Below are positions 7,481 through 36,934 of a stretch of 64,000 bases of DNA, in pieces (positions within the stretch are counted from its first letter, which is position 1; each line of letters begins with the position of its first letter). The notes below the pieces were generated by a model. The model worked only from the letters and a program-made list of their open reading frames with translations, ran no database searches and was not told the DNA's origin. Where the stretch lies: IMG/VR virus record IMGVR_UViG_3300049001_000044, positions 186,001-250,000 of that record; one strand, written 5' to 3'. Both the position numbers and the translations under genes were made by a program.

Positions 7481-7749
7481 TACTTACCTTCTTGCTCGAG
7501 ACGAAGGATGAACGAAGGAGTAACTCCTGGGCGGCCGAATGGCGAGTGCTTCACCCACAGCTCACATGCTCGTTCAGGATTCTGTTTCCAGAATTCGTAC
7601 ACCATGGCTTCTAGTTGGATCATCGCTTGGTGACCACGGTTTTGTCGCCGTACATCATCGGCGAATTCGTACTTCCAGTCGAAGCCTTTCAGACGCGCAG
7701 TCAGGGTTTCCTCATTAACTTTGGTCTGCAGAATTTCAAACACTTTCAT
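7480..7749 (-). CDS. hypothetical protein
   Basis: 89 aa, starts MKVFEILQ, DWxYEFADD motif. Confidence 0.65.
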   Translation of the reverse strand: MKVFEILQTKVNEETLTARLKGFDWKYEFADDVRRQNRGHQAMIQLEAMVYEFWKQNPERACELWVKHSPFGRPGVTPSFILRLEQEGK

Positions 7750-9111: not shown

Positions 9112-9186
9112 TGGTGGTTCCAGCGGGGATCGAACCCGCGACCTTAGGTTTTAGAGACCCGGCTCTGCCAACTGAGCTATGGAACC
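9112..9186 (-). tRNA. tRNA-Sup(CUA) amber suppressor 1
   Basis: Cloverleaf GGTTCCA/TGGAACC, loop CT-CTA-AA, A73, encoded CCA. Confidence 0.85.
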
Positions 9187-9264
9187 TGGTGGCGTGTATC
9201 GGACTCGAACCGATGACCAAGGAGTTTAGAGGTCCCTGCTCTACCAAACCTGAGCTAACACGCC
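9187..9264 (-). tRNA. tRNA-Sup(CUA) amber suppressor 2
   Basis: Cloverleaf GGCGTGT/ACACGCC, loop CT-CTA-AA, A73, encoded CCA. Confidence 0.85.
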
Positions 9265-12584: not shown

Positions 12585-12932
12585 TTATCGGATCGACTTG
12601 AGGTTTTCGGAAGGATGAGCGAGCAGGAAGTTCGCCATCGAGATGCCCAGCGCCTGTACCGACTTGGCGACTTCGATCGCCTTCAGCGCTTTCACGACGT
12701 TCTGTTTTTGAGCCTTGTGGCTTTCGTAGTTGTTCACCGCATCGGTTGCGATCTGCTTGGCCTTTGCTAGGTCACGCTCCTCGCAAACAGCCTGAATAAC
12801 GTCCATCGTGAAAAAGCCTGCGTCCATCGGTACTACTTGAGCGTTCATCTTTAAATCTCCATTTTCAACACCACTAAATTTGTGGTATGAGTTATTGTAA
12901 AATTTCCTCACAATAACAAAAACTGTATTCAA
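12585..12932 (-). CDS. hypothetical protein
   Basis: 115-aa ORF in operon. Confidence 0.55.
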   Translation of the reverse strand: MNTVFVIVRKFYNNSYHKFSGVENGDLKMNAQVVPMDAGFFTMDVIQAVCEERDLAKAKQIATDAVNNYESHKAQKQNVVKALKAIEVAKSVQALGISMANFLLAHPSENLKSIR

Positions 12933-13420
12933 AGAATAATGAACGACGTTGGCGGAGTACCGGTCAGGATGTGAATTGCTTTTCTCATATCAGGGAATGC
13001 AAGACCGCAGGATGGATCGACGCGAACAAAATTCTGCATCTGCTCCTCGAGCATGTCGCTGCTATCGTCAATGATGACGTAGGCTTCAACCTCATTGTTG
13101 TCGAGCCACTCCTGAATCTCAGTACCTCGGTTTCCGCCAGTCGTGCCAGTGACGCCGATCACTTCGCCTTCCACGCCCATCAGCAGAAGGGCCTGCTTAA
13201 CACCATCAAAGCCCAACACTTTGCGATTAGCAGAGGAGACAACGATCTTCGCGCCTGTCTCTTTGATGATCTTGTTGAGGATTGCGATGGCGACTGGATC
13301 TGCTTTTGATAGGAGATAGTTCAGACGATACTCGCCTGGAAAAATCTCCCTCATAGGAAGAGCAAAGATTGAACGATCGGAGTTCAAGACTCCATCGATG
13401 TCTAGGAAGATTACTTTCAT
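12929..13420 (-). CDS. HAD-family phosphatase (Swiss-Army-Knife RNA-repair HAD-like)
   Basis: MKVIFLDIDGVLN...IVVSS...YVIIDD. Confidence 0.8.
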   Translation of the reverse strand: MKVIFLDIDGVLNSDRSIFALPMREIFPGEYRLNYLLSKADPVAIAILNKIIKETGAKIVVSSANRKVLGFDGVKQALLLMGVEGEVIGVTGTTGGNRGTEIQEWLDNNEVEAYVIIDDSSDMLEEQMQNFVRVDPSCGLAFPDMRKAIHILTGTPPTSFIIL

Positions 13421-13550
13421 ATCAGTCCCATGCACTTGCCACACTTCACGCAGTGTTGGATTTTGCCCATGCCCGAATCTCGCATGCGCCATTCTCCTGC
13501 TTCATGTTGACACCTACGCGTCGTGATGAAGAACCATTTAAGCCAATTCA

Positions 13551-14021
13551 TCACCACCCCTTCGCAGCAACCCAAATGTCCGTCTCCAGTTCCCATGAGT
13601 TCGTAAGCTCAGGGAAGTTCTTGCGAACTTTTGTGTAGACGAGATGATTAGGAATACGACCTGGAGATTCAGGATGATTGACAATCTCCCATCCAAGGTC
13701 GCCAAGCAGAGAGACCACTGCACCAGAACGGCAGATGCCAGCGTGGCAGTTCACCCATACATTCTTCTTCAGCTCCCTTGCCTCCTTGATGAAGGCAGCA
13801 ATCTGCGCTGCTTGATAGGCAGCGATTGCGTTGCCGTTGATCTCGTCGTTGGTGTCGTCGAACTTTTGGAAGAGAACTTTGGCGAAAGGATATGCGAGCT
13901 TAGCATCTTGACCACCCTCATCGGTGATAGAGATAAGCCAGTCATCTTCCGTAACCGGGAATGGGAAGCTGCGAGCACCGACCTTCATGACGGCGGCGCG
14001 TGGGAAGTTTGCAGTTTTCAT
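13551..14021 (-). CDS. dual-specificity/tyrosine phosphatase-like protein
   Basis: VNCHAGICRSGA CX5R motif. Confidence 0.8.
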   Translation of the reverse strand: MKTANFPRAAVMKVGARSFPFPVTEDDWLISITDEGGQDAKLAYPFAKVLFQKFDDTNDEINGNAIAAYQAAQIAAFIKEARELKKNVWVNCHAGICRSGAVVSLLGDLGWEIVNHPESPGRIPNHLVYTKVRKNFPELTNSWELETDIWVAAKGW

Positions 14022-15637: not shown

Positions 15638-15868
15638 TTATTTATCCTTCCAGTCGGACAATTTAACAATCACGACCACGAACAGCCCAATTGCCGCCAT
15701 TGTTAGCAGAAGTGGAAGCAGCCCACCGACCACCACGAGGATGGTACCGACGATTGCAGCGACGATGCCAACGCCGTACGCAAGTGCGACGAGCAGGAAG
15801 GTTAGGATAAAGGGAGCAGCCAACACTCCCAAAATCCCGATCAGAATGTAGAAGAGTACTTTGATCAT
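15638..15868 (-). CDS. small membrane protein
   Basis: Highly hydrophobic 76 aa. Confidence 0.6.
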   Translation of the reverse strand: MIKVLFYILIGILGVLAAPFILTFLLVALAYGVGIVAAIVGTILVVVGGLLPLLLTMAAIGLFVVVIVKLSDWKDK

Positions 15869-16731
15869 ATGACGATAGGTTCGATTTCATGGACACCCAA
15901 CTCATTGACTTTCCAGAACTTGTCAGTGAGGGGTTCGGTTACAGTGAGAGCAGCCCAATCATCTGGTTCTCGGCTCTTGCCGTTCGCTACTTCCCTGATG
16001 CTACGATATGCGCCAGTGTCGAGGTTGGTCTGACCCTTAAAGCGGGTTGGGTGGCGCATGATAGTGTGGCCGCTGTAGATGTGGGACAGCTTCGGACCAA
16101 ACATTGTTCCAGCGTCGCTGCCTTCGAAGTACTTGCTGTGACGATCCTTGTCGTACTTCGCACCATACAGAGGCAGGAAGATGTATCGACCCCAGATGAT
16201 CGACTCGCCGTCTGCTGAGGGAGCTCGCGCAACATAGTTGAGAGTCTCCTCATTGTCTAGATCTTCATCACTCAGTTCGACAGGCGAACTCAGCTCTGCA
16301 TGGATGACGTGGAAGAATCCACCGTCTTGCTTTTTAACCGTCAGCATCAGGGGCAGTTCATTTGCCTTCTTCACTGCATCGCGAACGACAGCCGCTTCAT
16401 CGTCAGGGTTGTGAGGGTATGCGTATTGGATACCCCACGAACCACCGTTAGGTGCCCACCACATTCCAGTGGGACCGTTAAAGAAGAAGTCAGCCATCAG
16501 CTGCTCGTGATTACCTCGAACGGCGAAGAACCACGGCTCATAGATTAGCATCAGGCATTCGAGGCTGTTAGGCCCCCGATCCACCAAGTCGCCAACCGAA
16601 AAGATGCGGTCCTTCGTCTTGTCGAAGTTGATGAAGGCCATGAACTGGTACAGACGTTCGATGGCACCATGCAGATCGCCGATGACGAAGTCACGGCCGC
16701 CATTTTCATTCTTACCAATTCGGTGTCTCAT
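15865..16731 (-). CDS. metallophosphoesterase (Ser/Thr protein phosphatase, NinI/PrpA-like)
   Basis: GDLHG, GDLVDRG, RGNHE and GHT motifs. Confidence 0.9.
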   Translation of the reverse strand: MRHRIGKNENGGRDFVIGDLHGAIERLYQFMAFINFDKTKDRIFSVGDLVDRGPNSLECLMLIYEPWFFAVRGNHEQLMADFFFNGPTGMWWAPNGGSWGIQYAYPHNPDDEAAVVRDAVKKANELPLMLTVKKQDGGFFHVIHAELSSPVELSDEDLDNEETLNYVARAPSADGESIIWGRYIFLPLYGAKYDKDRHSKYFEGSDAGTMFGPKLSHIYSGHTIMRHPTRFKGQTNLDTGAYRSIREVANGKSREPDDWAALTVTEPLTDKFWKVNELGVHEIEPIVI

Positions 16732-21631: not shown

Positions 21632-22201
21632 TTACTTTACTTCCTTATCAACCGGTTCACGATCGATAATCTTGATCTTGTTAAGGTCGAACACAGCGAT
21701 TTCCCAGATGATACCCATATTCTCAGAAGTGTAATCGATGCTTTCGACCGCACCATTCAAACCAAATCGTTTGAATATCTGTTGTGCCTTCCGGTGCCCG
21801 ACGTGGTTAACGACTTCACCGATAAAACCACGACCGTTCTTCAGTGAATTGTGATCGCGCGGCATTGTCTTACGCGTGAAGCCCATGTACTCGGCAATCT
21901 TCTCCATCGTCTCTCTCATCCTGTCGGTTGGGAGCAACATATTGTTGTAGAAGTTGTCTACGTCGATTTCGACGGTGTACATTGTTGCGGTATCTGTGTT
22001 CGCGTGCTTTGCATATTTCTTCGCGAATTGTTTGTTCGTGATGAAGTACATTCCTGGACCAAGGATGCGATAGCCTTCGCCAGTTCCAGAAAACTTCAAA
22101 TCGAAGTCACCATCGAAGGTGTTACCGCAGTGGTATGCGGTAATCTTCTGTCCTTCAATGTTTGGGCGAACATATTCTTCAAATAGCTCTTTGACTTTCA
22201 T
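21632..22201 (-). CDS. ADP-ribosyltransferase-like (ART-PolyVal-type) protein
   Basis: AYHCG...FDLKFSGTGEG...GPGMYF pattern; MKVKELFEE N-terminus. Confidence 0.55.
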   Translation of the reverse strand: MKVKELFEEYVRPNIEGQKITAYHCGNTFDGDFDLKFSGTGEGYRILGPGMYFITNKQFAKKYAKHANTDTATMYTVEIDVDNFYNNMLLPTDRMRETMEKIAEYMGFTRKTMPRDHNSLKNGRGFIGEVVNHVGHRKAQQIFKRFGLNGAVESIDYTSENMGIIWEIAVFDLNKIKIIDREPVDKEVK

Positions 22202-22854: not shown

Positions 22855-22931
22855 TGGTTGCGGATGGTTGGATTCGAACCAACGACGCACGGGTTATGAG
22901 CCCGCTCTTCTGACCACTGAATTACACCGCA
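22855..22931 (-). tRNA. initiator-type tRNA-fMet(CAU)
   Basis: GGG/CCC in the anticodon stem, loop CT-CAT-AA, CCA. Confidence 0.8.
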
Positions 22932-24452: not shown

Positions 24453-24533
24453 TGGTGGGGAAGGAAGGTTTCGAACTTTCGACCTCTTCGATGTGCGCAC
24501 ATTCAAAGCGCTCTACCACTGAGCTACTCCCCC
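24453..24533 (-). tRNA. tRNA with an enlarged anticodon arm (13-nt loop); identity unclear
   Basis: Normal acceptor, D and T arms and CCA; loop AATGTGCGCACAT. Confidence 0.6.
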
Positions 24534-24552
24534 TACGTTAAGAGCACTTTGT

Positions 24553-24627
24553 CTGGGTGGCTGGATTTGAACCAGCGACCTCCCACTTCCAAGGCGGGCC
24601 GTCTGACCGGGCTGACAATACACCCAG
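24553..24627 (-). tRNA. tRNA-Pro(UGG) without encoded CCA, inside a 21-bp terminal stem
   Basis: Loop CT-TGG-AA; flanks 24539-24552 and 24628-24641 are complementary. Confidence 0.75.
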
Positions 24628-24862
24628 ACAAAGTGCTCTTACGCATACAACTTGATTACTACAGAAGGAGCCCGCGCTCAACCTCCTGTTCATCAAATTG
24701 TTTCGCTGCATTTCAGCAGCTCATCAGTGCGTTTAATTTACCACGAACATAGTGAAGAGAATCGAACTCTCCATCCCTGTCGAAGGGGACATTCCAATCC
24801 TTGCTACTTGTCTCGATCCTTCCAACCACTGTCGAGAACCCATTGGGTAGGGTGGTAAAACT

Positions 24863-24960: not shown

Positions 24961-25025
24961 ACCAACAAAGTAAGTGTTCGAAGGGGTAATCGTTAAAAGG
25001 GATAACCTTCGATCGTCCGGTTGGT
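24961..25025 (-). ncRNA. Y RNA-like element Y1 (minimal)
   Basis: ACCAAC-CG-GACG-ATCGAA-GG-TTATCC...CC-TTCGA-..CTTT-GTTGGT. Confidence 0.65.
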
Positions 25026-25031
25026 ATAACT

Positions 25032-25118
25032 TGGTGCGTACTGTAGGATTCGAACCTACTCAGCCAAAAGGCAACAGGGTTACAGCCTGCCACGACTCTC
25101 CCACTTCGTCGCGTACGC
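25032..25118 (-). tRNA. tRNA-Tyr(GUA)
   Basis: Loop CT-GTA-AC, long arm, CCA. Confidence 0.85.
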
Positions 25119-25125
25119 AATGTTT

Positions 25126-25211
25126 TGGTGCATGCAGTAGGAATCGAACCTACTCACCCAGAGGGAACGGATTTACAGTCCGCTGCGACTCTCCAACTTC
25201 GCCGTGCATGC
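25126..25211 (-). tRNA. tRNA-Tyr(GUA)
   Basis: Loop CT-GTA-AA, long arm, CCA. Confidence 0.88.
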
Positions 25212-25222
25212 TAAGAATTCGA

Positions 25223-25300
25223 TGGTCCGGGTAGAAGGATTCGAACCTTCGACCCCCTGCTCCCAAAGCAGGTGCGCTAACCAGACTGCGCTACACCCGG
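25223..25300 (-). tRNA. tRNA-Pro(UGG)
   Basis: Canonical, CCA. Confidence 0.92.
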
Positions 25301-25304
25301 ATAT

Positions 25305-25373
25305 TGACAACAAAAGATAAGGTGACGGAGAGGTTTTCGCAAAATGAAGGTAACCATCACCGGTCGGTTGTCA
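25305..25373 (-). ncRNA. Y RNA-like element Y2 (minimal)
   Basis: TGACAAC-CG-ACC-GGTGAT-GG-TTACC...CC-GTCACC-TTATCTTTT-GTTGTCA. Confidence 0.7.
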
Positions 25374-25410
25374 GACTTTCTAGATGGCTTCTAAGGCCAT
25401 CTGAAACAGA

Positions 25411-25543
25411 AATTTGTAAGAGCAACAAAAAGTGCCGTCGGGCATTGTCCACCTTAACCATAGGACATGTAGGAATCGAACCCACTCGGTTTTTATTTCC
25501 ATTAAAAAGATAACCAACTAGCTAGCGGTTACTCTTACAAATT
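25411..25543 (-). ncRNA. Y RNA-like element Y3 with T-arm and D-like hairpin
   Basis: 16-bp terminal stem, CG bulge, GG-TTATC, GTGGG-TTCGATT-CCTAC. Confidence 0.7.
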
Positions 25544-25572
25544 GCTGCTTCGTTGCTACTGAAGAGAAGTAA

Positions 25573-25601
25573 ATTATACAACGCTTTGTACTACTGAAAA
25601 A
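25573..25601 (-). promoter_or_regulatory. early-type promoter GTTTTC-N17-TATAAT
   Basis: Repeated motif. Confidence 0.6.
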
Positions 25602-25616
25602 CTGTAAGTTCGTTTT

Positions 25617-25745
25617 TGGTTGAGAATGTCTGGATTCGAACCAGATCCACGCCGATATGAGAGGATAACCAATCACAAGCCGGTTACGTAAGCAACAAAA
25701 ATTAGCGATCGATGTTTACGTGTGCTGCCATTACACCACATCTCA
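25617..25745 (-). ncRNA. Y4: CCA-ended tRNA body with a Y-like module replacing the anticodon loop
   Basis: Acceptor, D and T arms, CCA; insert GATCGC-TAATTTTT-GTTGC-TTAC-GTAAC-CG-GCTT-GTGATT-GG-TTATCC. Confidence 0.7.
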
Positions 25746-25805
25746 ATTGAACTTGCTGTGCTGCAAGAGATGATATTTTAACTTGAACTCTTGCAACTAA
25801 AAACT

Positions 25806-25944
25806 TGGTGGAGTTGGGTAGGATTCGAACCTACCTAAGCCAGAGGCGTCGCCTTTACATGGATAACCAATTACGAGGCGGTTGCATAACAACAAAAAGT
25901 TGTAATCGGGGATTTCGATGGGTTTTCCAATTCCCTACAACTCC
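25806..25944 (-). ncRNA. Y5: CCA-ended Tyr-like tRNA body with a Y-like module replacing the anticodon loop
   Basis: GGAGTTG/CAACTCC-A-CCA; insert CC-GATTAC-AACTTTTT-GTTGT-TAT-GCAAC-CG-CCTC-GTAATT-GG-TTATCC. Confidence 0.7.
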
Positions 25945-26072
25945 ATTCGCGTGAACATCTAGTAGTCCACTACCGATCAAAATCGTTACTGATGCCTGCC
26001 ACCATCGAGGGCGTCATTTCAGGCGAGCTCGCTATTAGCACGAGCTGGGCATTCTGTGCTGCAAGAGATGAT

Positions 26073-26102
26073 ATTTTATACCAACTGCTTGCAAATAAAA
26101 AC
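26073..26102 (-). promoter_or_regulatory. early-type promoter GTTTTT-N18-TAAAAT
   Basis: Near-duplicate of 25757-25804 (shared CTGTGCTGCAAGAGATGATATTTT). Confidence 0.6.
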
Positions 26103-26103
26103 T

Positions 26104-26180
26104 TGGTACCCACGGTGAGATTCGAACTCACATATCACAAGGATTAAGCTTGTTGCCGTTGCCAATTAGGCTACGTGGGC
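26104..26180 (-). tRNA. tRNA-Leu(UAA), short variable loop
   Basis: Loop CT-TAA-TC, A73, CCA. Confidence 0.8.
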
Positions 26181-26692
26181 AATGTTCTTCCACGCTTGAA
26201 TCCTTGGAACTGTTCGAATTGATCTGGTCTAATCAGCTTGTTGATTTTGCCGTCAGTTATCCAGAACTTGCCAAACTGCGGATTCTTGTCACCCAATCTT
26301 TTACCGACTTGGGCTTCGGAAACTTTCTTACGTTGCTCTTCAGTAAAGACATAGCCATGAACTGAATTTCTGATCTTGCTCTTGACCTCTTCGCTGTGGC
26401 TCTTGCCTTTGAAGTGTGGTCCACCTTCTCCTCCAACGCCAAGGTTGTAGGTATCAGATCGTTGAACAAAATCTTCAGTCACTAGCTCTTTCTCTTTGAG
26501 ATTCATTTCGTCCTCTGTGTCGAAGATGAAGAGAATCTCTTTCACGAAAGAGTCTTTACCGTATTTCTTGATCGCTGCATTCAGTGCTTTACCAGATCCA
26601 AAATACGAATCGTCAAGGTCAAGCGTCTGATGCTTACCAATGTAGAACTTACCGTTCGTAGTGTTGGTAATTTTGTAGATTGTGTAGAACAT
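26171..26692 (-). CDS. Seg-like GIY-YIG homing endonuclease with NUMOD3 motif
   Basis: TIYKITNTTNGKFYIGKH...YFGSG...E...YN; FKGKSHSEEVKSKI; start at 26692, TAG stop. Confidence 0.85.
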   Translation of the reverse strand: MFYTIYKITNTTNGKFYIGKHQTLDLDDSYFGSGKALNAAIKKYGKDSFVKEILFIFDTEDEMNLKEKELVTEDFVQRSDTYNLGVGGEGGPHFKGKSHSEEVKSKIRNSVHGYVFTEEQRKKVSEAQVGKRLGDKNPQFGKFWITDGKINKLIRPDQFEQFQGFKRGRTLPT

Positions 26693-26704
26693 AAAAGCAC
26701 TCAG

Positions 26705-26778
26705 TAGCGGGTAATGGATTCGAACCAATGATTTCCGGCTTATGAGACCGACGAGATAGACCACTTCTCTAACCCGCA
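26705..26778 (-). tRNA. tRNA(CAU), Met or Ile2 class, no encoded CCA
   Basis: Loop CT-CAT-AA, 1:72 mismatch. Confidence 0.75.
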
Positions 26779-26794
26779 ACTGAATACTCTCAAA

Positions 26795-26878
26795 TGGTAC
26801 CTCGGGTGGGATTCGAACCCACAAGGGTCTTGCTTCTAAGGCAAGTAGCTGTACCAGATTTACATTAACCACCGAGGC
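26795..26878 (-). tRNA. tRNA-Leu(UAG), short variable region
   Basis: Loop CT-TAG-AA, A73, CCA. Confidence 0.78.
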
Positions 26879-26880
26879 AT

Positions 26881-26959
26881 TGGTACCCAAGGACGGATTC
26901 GAACCGACAGATCACCGAGGTTTGAGCTCAGTAGCTTTACCAATTTGCGTAACTTGGGC
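26881..26959 (-). tRNA. tRNA-Leu(CAA), short variable region
   Basis: Loop CT-CAA-AC, A73, CCA. Confidence 0.8.
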
Positions 26960-26963
26960 AATG

Positions 26964-27084
26964 AATGAAACGAAAGTGAAAGTCGGTAAACCTCTTTCGA
27001 GGGTGTCGGACTTCGATGTCCGCTCTAGCGAGCCGAATAAGATCGGCAGCATTAACCCGATAACCAACAATCTACGGTTTCATT
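26964..27084 (-). ncRNA. Y RNA-like element Y6 with three internal hairpins
   Basis: AATGAAAC-CG...GTT-GG-TTATC...CC-GAC-TTTCACTTTC-GTTTCATT. Confidence 0.6.
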
Positions 27085-27241
27085 ATCACTATTAAGTCCA
27101 ATCCTATTAAGTGATCAATATAGGATTAAGAGAGATTTGGGAGATGCTCCTCTCTCAGTTGCCGATTTCCATTCCCACCGTCAAAGACGTTCAGCGTGAT
27201 GTTTCCATCTAGATAAACCCTCTTTCGAAGATGCATTTAGA

Positions 27242-27314
27242 TGGAGCGGGTGAAGGGATTCGAACCCTCTCCGACAGCTTGGAAGGCTGTGTCCTCTCCC
27301 AGGAGAACACCCGC
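27242..27314 (-). tRNA. tRNA-Gly(UCC)
   Basis: Loop CT-TCC-AA, U73, CCA. Confidence 0.85.
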
Positions 27315-27316
27315 GG

Positions 27317-27387
27317 TGGTGGACCGTAAGGGACTCGAACCCTTCCTACCGCAGTGCAAGTGCAGTGTCTACCCCTGTAGACAGCCC
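27317..27387 (-). tRNA. tRNA-Ala(UGC), compact D arm
   Basis: G3-U70, loop CT-TGC-AC, CCA. Confidence 0.75.
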
Positions 27388-27390
27388 ATA

Positions 27391-27514
27391 AACAAACAAA
27401 AGTAATTGAAGGAGTTGCTCTCGTCCAACTTCATGAGAGCTACTAGATTTCTCTAGTAATGGATTCGAACCATGTCATTCTTAAGCAAGGATAACCTTCA
27501 ATAAACGGTTTGTT
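27391..27514 (-). ncRNA. YrlA-like element Y7 (T-AS-D permuted tRNA domain)
   Basis: Y stem, then ATGG-TTCGAAT-CCAT, TACTAGA-GAAA-TCTAGTA and GCTCTC/GAGAGC hairpins. Confidence 0.75.
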
Positions 27515-27529
27515 GGTGAAACATAAACT

Positions 27530-27605
27530 TGGTGGAGGATATCGGTTTCGAACCGATCACCTCATGCTTGCAAAGCACGCGCTCTCCCAAATGAGCTAAT
27601 CCCCC
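27530..27605 (-). tRNA. tRNA-Ala(UGC)
   Basis: G3-U70, loop TT-TGC-AA, CCA. Confidence 0.9.
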
Positions 27606-27666
27606 ATACGTATAAGACGACATATCCGACTCTGAAGACCGGCTGTGGGACCTTATACTTGAAAAT

Positions 27667-27742
27667 TGGAGCGGGTAAGGGGACTCGAACCCCTGACATC
27701 TTCCTTGGCAAGGAAGTGCTCTACCAACTGAGCTACACCCGC
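27667..27742 (-). tRNA. tRNA-Gly(GCC)
   Basis: Loop TT-GCC-AA, U73, CCA. Confidence 0.92.
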
Positions 27743-27746
27743 ATAA

Positions 27747-27891
27747 GCAACAAAGGAGCGATAACGAAGATACCCTTTCGGGTGGACCGGCGCGTCTACC
27801 ATTCCGCCATCACCAAATTTCTTCGGTGAGAGGGACTCGAACCCTCACGTCTTGCGACACCTGTTTGAGATAATCATTATCTATCGGTTGC
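27747..27891 (-). ncRNA. YrlA-like element Y8 (permuted tRNA-Leu-like domain)
   Basis: Y stem with GA/TC covariation; Leu-type variable arm, T-arm, loop-capped acceptor stem, D arm TGGCGGAATGGTAGACGCG. Confidence 0.75.
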
Positions 27892-28140
27892 AAAGTTTAT
27901 TGCTGATAATTTGAAGTAGTTTCCCGTTAGTAGTCTTAGGTCCGCTTAGGACTGCTTTTCCGCTTCCACACTTCTAGTAAGTATTGTGGAGATACGGTAA
28001 TTGCACTTAGACTCCCCGTTTAACTAGAGATCACTCAGAGTACTCTACCGGGTCTACATCAAACCATCAAGTAGCAACCCTGGCTGCCGCCAACTCCATA
28101 CTGGTATAAGAGAGTCAGACTTTTCAAGGAAGCTACTTGA

Positions 28141-36040: not shown

Positions 36041-36061
36041 GTGAGTATACTCCTTCTTGGA

Positions 36062-36934
36062 TTAGTTTAGGCCGGCGAGTTTACGCAGTTGCGCGAACTG
36101 ATCGGTGGTCGACTTGGCTGGAGCAGCAGGTGCACGCTCTTCACCGGTTTTTACAACACTAGCACCCTCGGTCAGAGGAGTTGCTGCAGCAGCCGGCTTG
36201 GTGTCTTCTTTCAGAACACGGCCGATGAATTGGTTGTAGGCTTCTTCCAGACGATCGGTTTCGATGTTCTGGAGTACGAATGCCATTTGCTCACGCTTCT
36301 TACCAGACAGCGGGGCAAGAATCTTTTCGAGTTTCGATTCACGCACAATCTTGGCATTTGCGGACTCAAGAGTCGCGATTGCTTTGTTGGCGTCATCGAG
36401 TTTAGCAACAGCGGCTTGGAGCTTCGATTGGATCGAGTCTTCATCGATGTGCGACTTGGTAAATTCGGTAGCGAATGCTTCGAAGATCTTGCGACCAAAC
36501 TCATTCTGCTTGACGATGTCAAGGTCTTCTTTGAGTTCAGTAAATTCCTCATTCAGACGGAGCTCGAAGAACGAGTCGATCTTATCGATGAGAGAGTCAA
36601 GTTCTTCTGCTAGCTGGTCAGCCATCGAGTGCTTTTCCTCGACGATCTTTTCAGCATATTCTGCTTCGAGATCACGGAAACGTTCGATGTCAGCTTTCAG
36701 TTCGGCTACTTCTTCTTCCAACTTCGCAGCAACGAATTGCTCGACGTTCTCAACCAAAGCATCACGTTCGGTGGCCCACTGTTCTGCAAGCTCGCTTCTC
36801 ACTGTCATGGAAACTTCTTCACGTACTGCAGTTTTGTACTGCGATACGGCTTCGGTCCACTGAGAGGAGATTTCGTTCTTAGCGTCTTCGCTAAGAAGTT
36901 CAGAGCTTAGCAGTTTCTGGAGGATTTCATCCAT
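36062..36934 (-). CDS. gp22: prohead core scaffold protein
   Basis: Acidic coiled coil upstream of gp23; FGRKIFEAF motif; C-terminus LRKLAGLN. Confidence 0.85.
   Translation of the reverse strand: MDEILQKLLSSELLSEDAKNEISSQWTEAVSQYKTAVREEVSMTVRSELAEQWATERDALVENVEQFVAAKLEEEVAELKADIERFRDLEAEYAEKIVEEKHSMADQLAEELDSLIDKIDSFFELRLNEEFTELKEDLDIVKQNEFGRKIFEAFATEFTKSHIDEDSIQSKLQAAVAKLDDANKAIATLESANAKIVRESKLEKILAPLSGKKREQMAFVLQNIETDRLEEAYNQFIGRVLKEDTKPAAAATPLTEGASVVKTGEERAPAAPAKSTTDQFAQLRKLAGLN

Follow-up and report, generated by a model that had tools for sequence, protein, structure and literature searches.

Conservation of Y RNAs and Ro60 extends from bacteria to humans, and the partner recruited by the second domain of a Y RNA is, to our knowledge, not yet known. 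In hY1 and hY4, the upper stem is followed by GUUAUC. The Ro60-binding helix of animal Y RNAs reads GUC-[C]-GA opposite UU-GAC, as is also given in PMC4201824. YrlA RNAs have been described from Salmonella, Mycobacterium smegmatis and mycobacteriophages (Chen et al., 2014; PMC4201824; RF02553), and a conserved YUAY opens their variable loop (PMC4201824). In the Thermus phage phiLo, a phage Ro60 was demonstrated to bind phage Y-like RNAs and the host PNPase (PMC12135203), and phage Y RNAs adjoining Ro60 genes are already known (Chen et al., 2014; phiLo, 2025). The locus considered here lies on a metagenomic jumbo phage contig of 343,229 bp (JGI Ga0494384_0000001, IMG/VR UViG_3300049001_000044), of which a stretch of 64,000 nucleotides (nt), positions 186,001–250,000, was analysed and is called the window hereafter. 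Eight minus-strand elements (E1–E8) are intertwined there with tRNA genes of the same strand, the array occupying approximately 210,961–213,891 of the record. They belong very probably to the Y RNA (YrlA-like) family. The explanation preferred as a whole, with a probability of about 0.68, is that of Y RNAs which undergo tRNA-type processing, bind Ro60 and tether partners by variable heads. The literature searched, with many journals outside it, holds no account of Y RNA arrays in phage tRNA clusters away from Ro60, of an AAC/GUU subfamily or of unpermuted, CCA-ended tRNA-shaped Y RNAs.

The first-pass annotation had claimed eight minus-strand elements within 24961–27891 of the window. Indeed, the pattern AACCG, 8–14 nt, TTAYC matches eight times in this interval, once elsewhere in the window (59994) and nowhere on the plus strand; the eight start coordinates proposed are the 3' ends of the elements. 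The common layout described for them was also recovered on the minus strand. A lower stem ending in AAC is followed by C, G, 3–5 variable nt, an upper stem ending in GG (GA in E8) and UUAYC, whereby the return strand consists of CC (UC in E8), the upper-stem partner, an 8–11-nt loop ending in U's and a GUU running into the lower stem. The last motif of the first strand is UUAUC in seven elements and UUACC in E2, so that YUAY stands at the start of the variable loop throughout. All stem pairs quoted earlier were found (GTGATGG/CCGTCAC, GTAATTGG/CCGATTAC, TTGAAGG/CCTTCAA, and GA:TC in E8), and the minus strand pairs better thanks to G-U pairs, three of them in the upper stem of E4. Both stems pair in eight of the eight elements, the upper stem of E6 being weak, and minimum free energy folds give the two-stem layout. 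When the flanks were shuffled (300 trials per element), an equally good partner arose in 0.7–8% of the trials; pairing in all eight is therefore far beyond chance. The module resembles metazoan Y RNAs (hY1, hY3, hY4, hY5) in having a lower stem, a single bulged C, a U-paired G, a U-rich opposite strand and an upper stem. The metazoan RNAs differ in the lower stem (GUC/GAC versus AAC/GUU here) and have no tRNA-like domain, and common descent is unproven.

The identification rests mainly on a comparison set of 86 viral loci picked solely for encoding Ro60 (TROVE). The TROVE search of viral contigs had more than 465 loci, of which the best 80 were covered; the source contig and the other array-bearing contigs are missing from these 80, an absence that is uninformative. 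In the 86 loci, a loose form of the module pattern gave 158 matches on the Ro60 strand versus 24 on the opposite one, and complete modules numbered 88 versus 1. Their consensus reads R-G-C, C, G, (G/A)(A), stem-GG, UUAYC, and back via ...YUU and GYY. Both the Ro60-adjacent and the tRNA-cluster sets keep the bulged C, the G, the GG/CC pairs and UUAYC without change. The closing triplet of the lower stem covaries across the family (GGC/GCC, AGC/GCU or GUU, GAC/GUC, AAC/GUU). The reservation made at the outset, that the lower stem reads AAC/GUU rather than GUC/GAC, is correct, and AAC/GUU is among the states that the covarying RRC/GYY triplet takes.

These Ro60-adjacent RNAs alone served to build two covariance models. 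Their training sequences came from unrelated viral contigs, with nothing taken from the window or from the AACCG pattern search. Model R1 is derived from 21 minimal hairpins (alignment A2), in which 86.5% of the cells are paired, compared to 62% after shuffling; the observed covariation score was reached in 0 of 500 shuffles, and slid controls gave at most 0.20 versus 0.67. Model R2 is derived from 15 YrlA-type RNAs (alignment A3), for which RNAalifold found the lower stem, upper stem, T arm, acceptor-like stem and D arm, with compensatory changes in 23 of 31 pairs. With its filters switched off, R1 was run on the two strands of the window and ranked E1 first (22.2 bits, E 0.004) and E2 second (20.5 bits, E 0.011), each matched over its full length, followed by the next match at 12.6 bits; the E-values of both models are rough, coming from a short calibration. 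Full-length matches to R2 were obtained for E7 (38.2 bits, E 6e-7), E3 (34.2 bits, E 5e-6) and E8 (29.9 bits, E 5e-5), and further ones for E4 (24.6 bits, a partial alignment), E1 (23.2 bits) and E2 (19.2 bits). Both models also match tRNA-cluster elements of other phage contigs, with up to 55 bits. The Y RNA-like identity is thus borne out by homology to Ro60-adjacent RNAs and not by Rfam (see below). A weak R1 match on the plus strand of the window (7528–7576, 12.5 bits, E 0.9) has the canonical GCCGAAUG ... ACAUGCUCG strands without an upper stem or UUAUC, and is probably due to chance.

The module appears in three topologies of one fold (coordinates refer to the minus strand of the window). 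The simplest are the minimal hairpins E1 and E2, 65–67 nt long and without a tRNA-like domain. E1 (24961–25025), located between tRNA-Tyr and tRNA-Leu, is composed of a lower stem (25020–25025/24961–24966), the bulge strand CGGACGA (25013–25019), an upper stem (25006–25012/24978–24984) and UUAUC (25001–25005). E2 (25306–25372) ends 5 nt ahead of tRNA-Pro, with its lower stem at 25367–25372/25306–25311, upper stem at 25354–25360/25322–25328 and UUACC at 25349–25353.

The second topology is a circularly permuted tRNA mimic as in YrlA (PMC4201824; bioRxiv 10.1101/312249). In E7 and E8, UUAUC is followed by a short variable hairpin, a T arm (GGUUCGA(A/G)UCC), a loop-closed stem of 5–7 base pairs, a D arm and then the upper stem. 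The YrlA-type E7 (27391–27514) has a Ro-type stem with lower part 27508–27514/27391–27397 and upper part 27495–27501/27406–27412, and a head made of the T arm (27459–27473), the closed acceptor-like stem with a GAAA loop (27441–27458) and the D arm (27417–27440). E8 (27747–27891), likewise YrlA-type and with the GA:UC variant of the GG:CC pairs, has its lower stem at 27887–27891/27747–27751, upper stem at 27874–27880/27761–27767, T arm at 27830–27846, closed acceptor-like stem at 27810–27829 and D arm at 27790–27807. Reduced permuted forms are represented by E3 and E6. E3 (25411–25543) combines a 16-bp lower stem (25528–25543/25411–25426) with a T arm (25469–25485) and a D-like hairpin (25446–25467), lacks the acceptor-like stem, and has orthologous copies in three other phage contigs (L024, L018, L026). 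E6 (26964–27084) is the weakest member, assigned by the module signature and the lower stem only: the module surrounds three degenerate hairpins, including a T-like arm and a GAAA-capped stem, with a lower stem of 8 bp (27077–27084/26964–26971), an upper stem of 5 pairs out of 7 and UUAUC at 27059–27063.

E4 and E5 have the reverse permutation, a feature absent from the first-pass annotation: the return strand of the upper stem is placed upstream of the AACCG strand, and both termini of the RNA lie at a tRNA-like acceptor stem of 7 bp. The lower stem is closed into a hairpin, GUUGC-UUAC-GUAAC in E4 and GUUGU-UAU-GCAAC in E5. Around it, the order is that of a tRNA, with a 7-nt acceptor strand and D arm on one side and the T arm, acceptor 3' strand, discriminator A and encoded CCA on the other. 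Both are tRNA bodies with a bulged helix of 45–50 nt instead of the anticodon arm and loop. In the unpermuted, tRNA-shaped E4 (25617–25746), the 5' part includes the acceptor 5' strand (25739–25746), D arm (25722–25736), upper-stem return strand (25705–25712) and U-rich loop (25697–25704). The closed lower hairpin (25683–25696), CG strand (25677–25682), upper stem (25669–25676) and UUAUC (25664–25668) form its middle, and the T arm (25629–25645) and acceptor 3' strand with ACCA (25617–25628) its 3' end. E5 (25806–25944), also tRNA-shaped and unpermuted, has a long variable region and an encoded CCA: the acceptor (25938–25944/25810–25816) is followed by A and CCA down to 25806, the D arm lies at 25920–25935, the upper stem at 25902–25909/25867–25874, the lower hairpin at 25881–25893 and the T arm at 25818–25834. 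Orthologues of E4 were found in L018 and L024, and those of E5, in L024 and L026, show compensatory acceptor changes. Neither ARAGORN nor the Rfam tRNA model called any of the eight elements, none of which forms a cloverleaf with a 7-nt anticodon loop.

As in YrlA, the 5' and 3' ends of E7 and E8 pair into a stem with the presumed Ro60 site, and UUAYC corresponds to YUAY. The order T arm, closed acceptor, D arm is complete in E7 and E8, partial in E3 and E6 and missing in E1 and E2, whereas E4 and E5 keep the normal tRNA order. The present locus differs in having eight copies in a single tRNA cluster and in the unpermuted form of E4 and E5. The paper on the YrlA structure speculates that some YrlA RNAs may be processed to more tRNA-like forms (bioRxiv 10.1101/312249). 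Yrn1 of Deinococcus radiodurans has a Ro60-binding helix with both strands recognisable and a tRNA-like part containing a T arm, and it tethers Rsr to PNPase; its arms are arranged in another order, and it is a single locus beside rsr. E7/E8 (closed acceptor, open "anticodon" stem) are related to E4/E5 (the reverse) by a circular permutation of one fold, comparable to that of permuted tRNA genes in algae and archaea. The latter, however, are precursors of real tRNAs with anticodons, and the elements described here have no anticodon loop.

Copies of the module were located on the tRNA strand of tRNA clusters in at least seven other large phage contigs (L007, L018, L024/L059, L026, L036, L048/L079 and L058). 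L048/L079 (IMG/VR 3300031820_000002 and 3300032205_000001) has at least 12 modules of all three topologies at approximately 7.7–13.6 kb of L048, several in direct tandem and scoring up to 55 bits with R1/R2, and would be a better model array than the window. In the first pattern scan of viral contigs, about 50 of 77 loci were chance matches inside protein-coding genes. The AAC variant is not restricted to tRNA clusters, as it adjoins Ro60 genes in six loci (L003/L081, L033 with four tandem copies, L175, L176, L177 and L184). In L003/L081 the copy has no tRNA cluster around it and lies 20 nt upstream of a gene for a 539-residue protein with TROVE (4e-46) and Ro60-vWA (5e-55) domains. Scanning of bacterial genomes for the AAC variant gave 16 loci with five genuine elements (L175–L177, L182, L184); in four of them (L175, L176, L177, L184) a Ro60 gene is located within 5 kb on the same strand, and the contig of L182 ends just past the element. 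Five of the 16 loci were ordinary tRNA-Ser(GCU) genes, one was a tRNA-Sec and one more was probably a tRNA-Sec. The tRNA-Ser(GCU) genes of Omnitrophota, Planctomycetia and Bacteroidota (L170–L174, L180) match AACCG...GGTTATCC...GGTTCGAATCC on their own, and any pattern search for these Y RNAs will therefore collect class II tRNAs. The upper stem and UUAUC probably go back to the anticodon stem and the beginning of the variable arm of a class II tRNA.

The tRNA-shaped copies are also found beside Ro60, in a cyanobacterial locus (L177) and in phage arrays (L105, L110, L114, L115, L138, L149, L153). A joint alignment of 18 tRNA-shaped RNAs, nine from tRNA clusters (including two from the window) and nine Ro60-adjacent, showed compensatory changes in 19 of 24 pairs of the acceptor, D, upper, lower and T stems. 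Apart from one homing endonuclease, no proteins were common to the flanks of the Ro60 loci and the window.

Several results weigh against Ro60-binding Y RNAs, beginning with the family tests. Rfam was run on the window and its sub-regions at gathering and permissive thresholds, and YrlA (RF02553) and Y_RNA (RF00019), the models suggested for checking, match no element even at E<=10. This test has low power, since a phage YrlA adjoining Ro60 (L003) reaches only 34.9 bits with the Rfam YrlA model versus a gathering score of 69, which shows its insensitivity to phage variants. With R2, E5 scores via its T arm only, and E6 (12.1 bits, E 0.8) is significant with neither model. Moreover, R2 also scores junctions of tandem tRNAs (its best match is 24501–24596), so that generic T and D arms contribute to its score, an artefact expected from its tRNA-like core. 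The published YrlA motif GNCGAAN0-1G is absent: all eight elements read AAC-CG-N, retaining only C-CG, and lie below any Rfam threshold. A purine-A after CG is present in one of the eight (CGGA in E1); across the sets, CG(G/A)A follows the bulge in 70% of the 88 Ro60-adjacent modules (30% lack it) and in 4 of the 31 from tRNA clusters. In addition, the closing triplet is AAC in 29 of the 31 tRNA-cluster modules versus 1 of the 88 Ro60-adjacent ones, in which GGC or AGC is usual.

The genomic position points in the same direction. Known YrlA genes have a same-strand Ro60 gene no more than approximately 4 kb away, and the eight elements have none. That no Ro60 gene is visible in the window, as noted at first, was confirmed with its large open reading frames against Pfam and with a TROVE hidden Markov model that was derived from seven phage Ro60 proteins and applied without filters to the six reading frames. 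Pfam and the permissive TROVE model likewise gave no TROVE or vWA_Ro60 in positions 119,839–271,930 of the record (152 kb, 44% of the genome), so that Ro60 is absent for 91 kb to one side of the array and for 58 kb to the other. This span contains structural genes, terminase, gp32/UvsX/UvsW, ribonucleotide reductase, Thg1, Acb1 and several AAA_33 kinases; the slot between the sheath and tube genes, home of Ro60 in Atu_ph07 and Phosso, is empty in the source contig. Among isolated phages, tblastn with two Ro60 queries detected Ro60 in about 375, mostly actinophages, but also Atu_ph07, Phosso and some Vibrio and Caulobacter phages. The closest isolates (RsoM2USA, XacN1, CM1, RAS14 and Xoo-sp13) gave no TROVE match in this search. 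No Ro60 was found in the examined flanks of the other tRNA-cluster arrays. The phiLo RNAs Yrl1 and Yrl2 are similar as phage-encoded stem-bulge-stem Y-like RNAs, and the phiRo60-PNPase mechanism is the one proposed below; they are, however, located directly upstream of the phage Ro60 and have CGAA, while here no Ro60 is nearby and CGAA is lacking in seven of the eight. Since no Ro60 gene lies nearby and seven of the eight elements lack CG(R)A, Ro60 binding is a prediction, to which we give somewhat better than even odds.

These observations give the best standing to an alternative in which the fold and ancestry are the same and the partner is another, for instance a protein encoded by the phage, an enzyme of tRNA modification or repair, or a highly divergent ring protein; the RNAs would then act independently of Ro60. 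It draws on the difference between the two sets in AAC and in G/A-A after CG (13% versus 70%) and on the Ro60-free 152 kb and flanks. On the other side, AAC modules are situated directly beside Ro60 in L003, L033, L175, L176, L177 and L184, the tRNA-shaped copies adjoining Ro60 also lack GAA, and the bulged C, G, GG/CC and UUAYC are invariant in both sets. Altogether, a partner other than Ro60 appears rather unlikely. Quite improbable is a role in processing or protection of the polycistronic tRNA transcript, either as punctuation guiding RNase P, Z or E, or as decoys for nucleases or toxins that attack tRNAs. It would fit the position of all eight elements between tRNAs on the tRNA strand, the ending of five of them 4–11 nt upstream of a tRNA 5' end, and the complete acceptor, D and T arms with CCA in E4 and E5. 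Nevertheless, it leaves unexplained the invariant bulged helix and its conservation beside Ro60 far from tRNA clusters, and the elements lack the anticodon loop, which anticodon nucleases usually attack. Finally, that the elements are decayed or rearranged tRNA genes without function is hardly credible, as the remnants of T arm, D arm and acceptor and the match of bacterial tRNA-Ser(GCU) alone to AACCG...GGTTATC...T-loop (L170–L174) speak for tRNA ancestry, but both stems show compensatory changes across unrelated phage and bacterial lineages, several motifs are invariant, and E3, E4 and E5 have orthologues in other contigs.

Other known RNAs were considered as well. The only Rfam YrlA match in the window (24510–24580) is the junction of two adjacent tRNAs. 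Self-cleaving ribozymes (hammerhead, HDV-like) were rejected, with no core motifs and no Rfam ribozyme match on the eight elements. The T4 rnaC and rnaD are similar in being small stable RNAs of unknown function that are located and processed with phage tRNAs, and rnaC has a T arm, yet the sequence of neither contains the AACCG...GGTTAYC module. The E3–E5 region had no blastn match in isolated phages, and the whole region matches them via tRNAs only. In XacN1, positions 1–68 kb (including the tRNA-bearing terminal repeat) contain no convincing element, the sole R2 match being a tandem tRNA pair, and the RsoM2USA region downstream of the capsid gene has no tRNAs at all.

The source contig has T4-type capsid and portal genes, the capsid protein being 64% identical to that of the Ralstonia jumbo phage RsoM2USA and 52–57% to those of XacN1, CM1/RAS14 and Xoo-sp13. 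At least 26 tRNA genes are encoded on the minus strand between 9 and 28 kb of the window. Small open reading frames among them, all on the minus strand, encode a HAD "Swiss-army-knife" RNA-repair domain protein (HAD_SAK_2, 12929–13492), a DSP-like phosphatase (13551–14021), a calcineurin-type phosphoesterase (Metallophos, 15865–16731), an ADP-ribosyltransferase (ART-PolyVal, 21632–22201) and, between tRNA-Met and tRNA-Leu, a GIY-YIG/NUMOD3 SegE-like homing endonuclease (26171–26697), placed similarly to segB in the tRNA cluster of T4. Farther off, at 129–160 kb of the contig (L190, L192, L193), there are Thg1 (tRNA-His guanylyltransferase), three AAA_33/Zeta-toxin-type kinases, a CTP_transf_like nucleotidyltransferase and Acb1 (anti-CBASS). 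The neighbours of RNA-repair type (HAD_SAK_2, Metallophos and the DSP-like phosphatase, with Thg1 and the AAA_33 kinases at a distance) are counted in favour of Ro60-binding Y RNAs.

The cluster has further features. Two tandem tRNAs with a CUA anticodon at 9112–9264 (minus strand), called "Pyl" by ARAGORN, are amber suppressor tRNAs, and the equivalent pair of XacN1 is annotated as tRNA-Sup (36047–36205); they may serve stop-codon read-through or recoding late in infection. Two tRNA-like genes on the minus strand were missed by ARAGORN: 22859–22930, with 52.5 bits to the Rfam tRNA model, and 26798–26860, which with 25.5 bits is just below the threshold and has an acceptor, T arm, ACCA and a possible UAG anticodon. 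A hammerhead type III-like sequence at 24695–24753 (minus strand), outside the eight elements, is situated just downstream of a tRNA run and behind a T-arm-like hairpin. It has an intact CUGAUGAG, stem II and CGAAAC core with weak stems I and III, and reached 32.5 bits in Rfam versus a gathering score of 48.5 (E 1.7e-5 in a small search). Unannotated non-coding stretches of 110–250 nt between tRNAs and elements (27892–28140, 27085–27241 and 25945–26055, minus strand) may be additional structured RNAs or leaders, and one of them contains a long hairpin, TCAAGTAGC ... GCTACTTGA, at approximately 28075–28140. Promoter-like hexamers are present upstream of E3, E6 and the E5 region, in a number of sites not above chance; a simple promoter scan flags 26095–26068, 25600–25573 (upstream of E3) and 27110–27082 (upstream of E6). 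Two minus-strand copies of a repeat some 45 nt long (TTGCAAG, about 15 nt, TATCATCTCTTGCAGCACAG) lie at 25755–25800 and 26055–26100, each directly behind a CCA end (of E5 and of tRNA-Leu-UAA, respectively); the former is upstream of E4, and the latter holds one of the hexamers. It looks like a promoter of the next unit.

From structure, covariation, homology to Ro60-adjacent RNAs and genomic context, we infer the following course for Ro60-binding Y RNAs, from transcription to biological role. The eight RNAs would be co-transcribed with the tRNA cluster from the minus strand, and their ends are probably cut by tRNA processing enzymes, because five elements (E1, E2, E6, E7 and E8) end 4–11 nt ahead of the 5' end of the next tRNA, an expected RNase P site, and because E4 and E5 have tRNA-like ends with encoded CCA. 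The constant bulged helix (lower stem, unpaired C, G, asymmetric U-rich loop, upper stem and UUAYC) would bind the ring of Ro60/Rsr, as it is the module conserved beside Ro60 genes and has the same layout as the Ro60-binding helix of animals. The Ro60 partner might be that of the host, or be encoded in the phage genome outside the 44% read. The heads, which are lacking, a permuted tRNA mimic or a whole tRNA body, may tether differing partners such as PNPase or tRNA-handling or repair enzymes, the precedents being Rsr-Y RNA-PNPase in Deinococcus and Salmonella and the phiRo60-Yrl-PNPase of phiLo. In this way the phage could steer RNA surveillance, decay or repair during infection, which is close to the first-pass proposal that its RNAs could sponge or retarget a Ro60/PNPase complex. 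The main doubt concerns the Ro60 binding step, because the tRNA-cluster subfamily lacks CG(R)A, which makes another or divergent partner a real alternative.

Overall, a single phage offers here a natural series of heads on a constant stem, so that the "tether" model becomes directly testable. The Rfam YrlA model misses most of the phage members of the family. Many Y RNAs kept away from any Ro60 gene point to an exploitation of the host Ro60/PNPase or repair machinery in infection, and the use of such arrays is possibly tied to the fight over tRNA cleavage. A broader generalisation, doubtful at present, is that jumbo phages carry batteries of Y RNAs in their tRNA clusters independently of a Ro60 gene, hijacking the Ro60 of the host or acting without it, and that these RNAs are also the missing link for an origin of Y RNAs from class II tRNAs via replacement of the anticodon loop. 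The tRNA-shaped form itself bears on the origin of Y RNAs from tRNAs.

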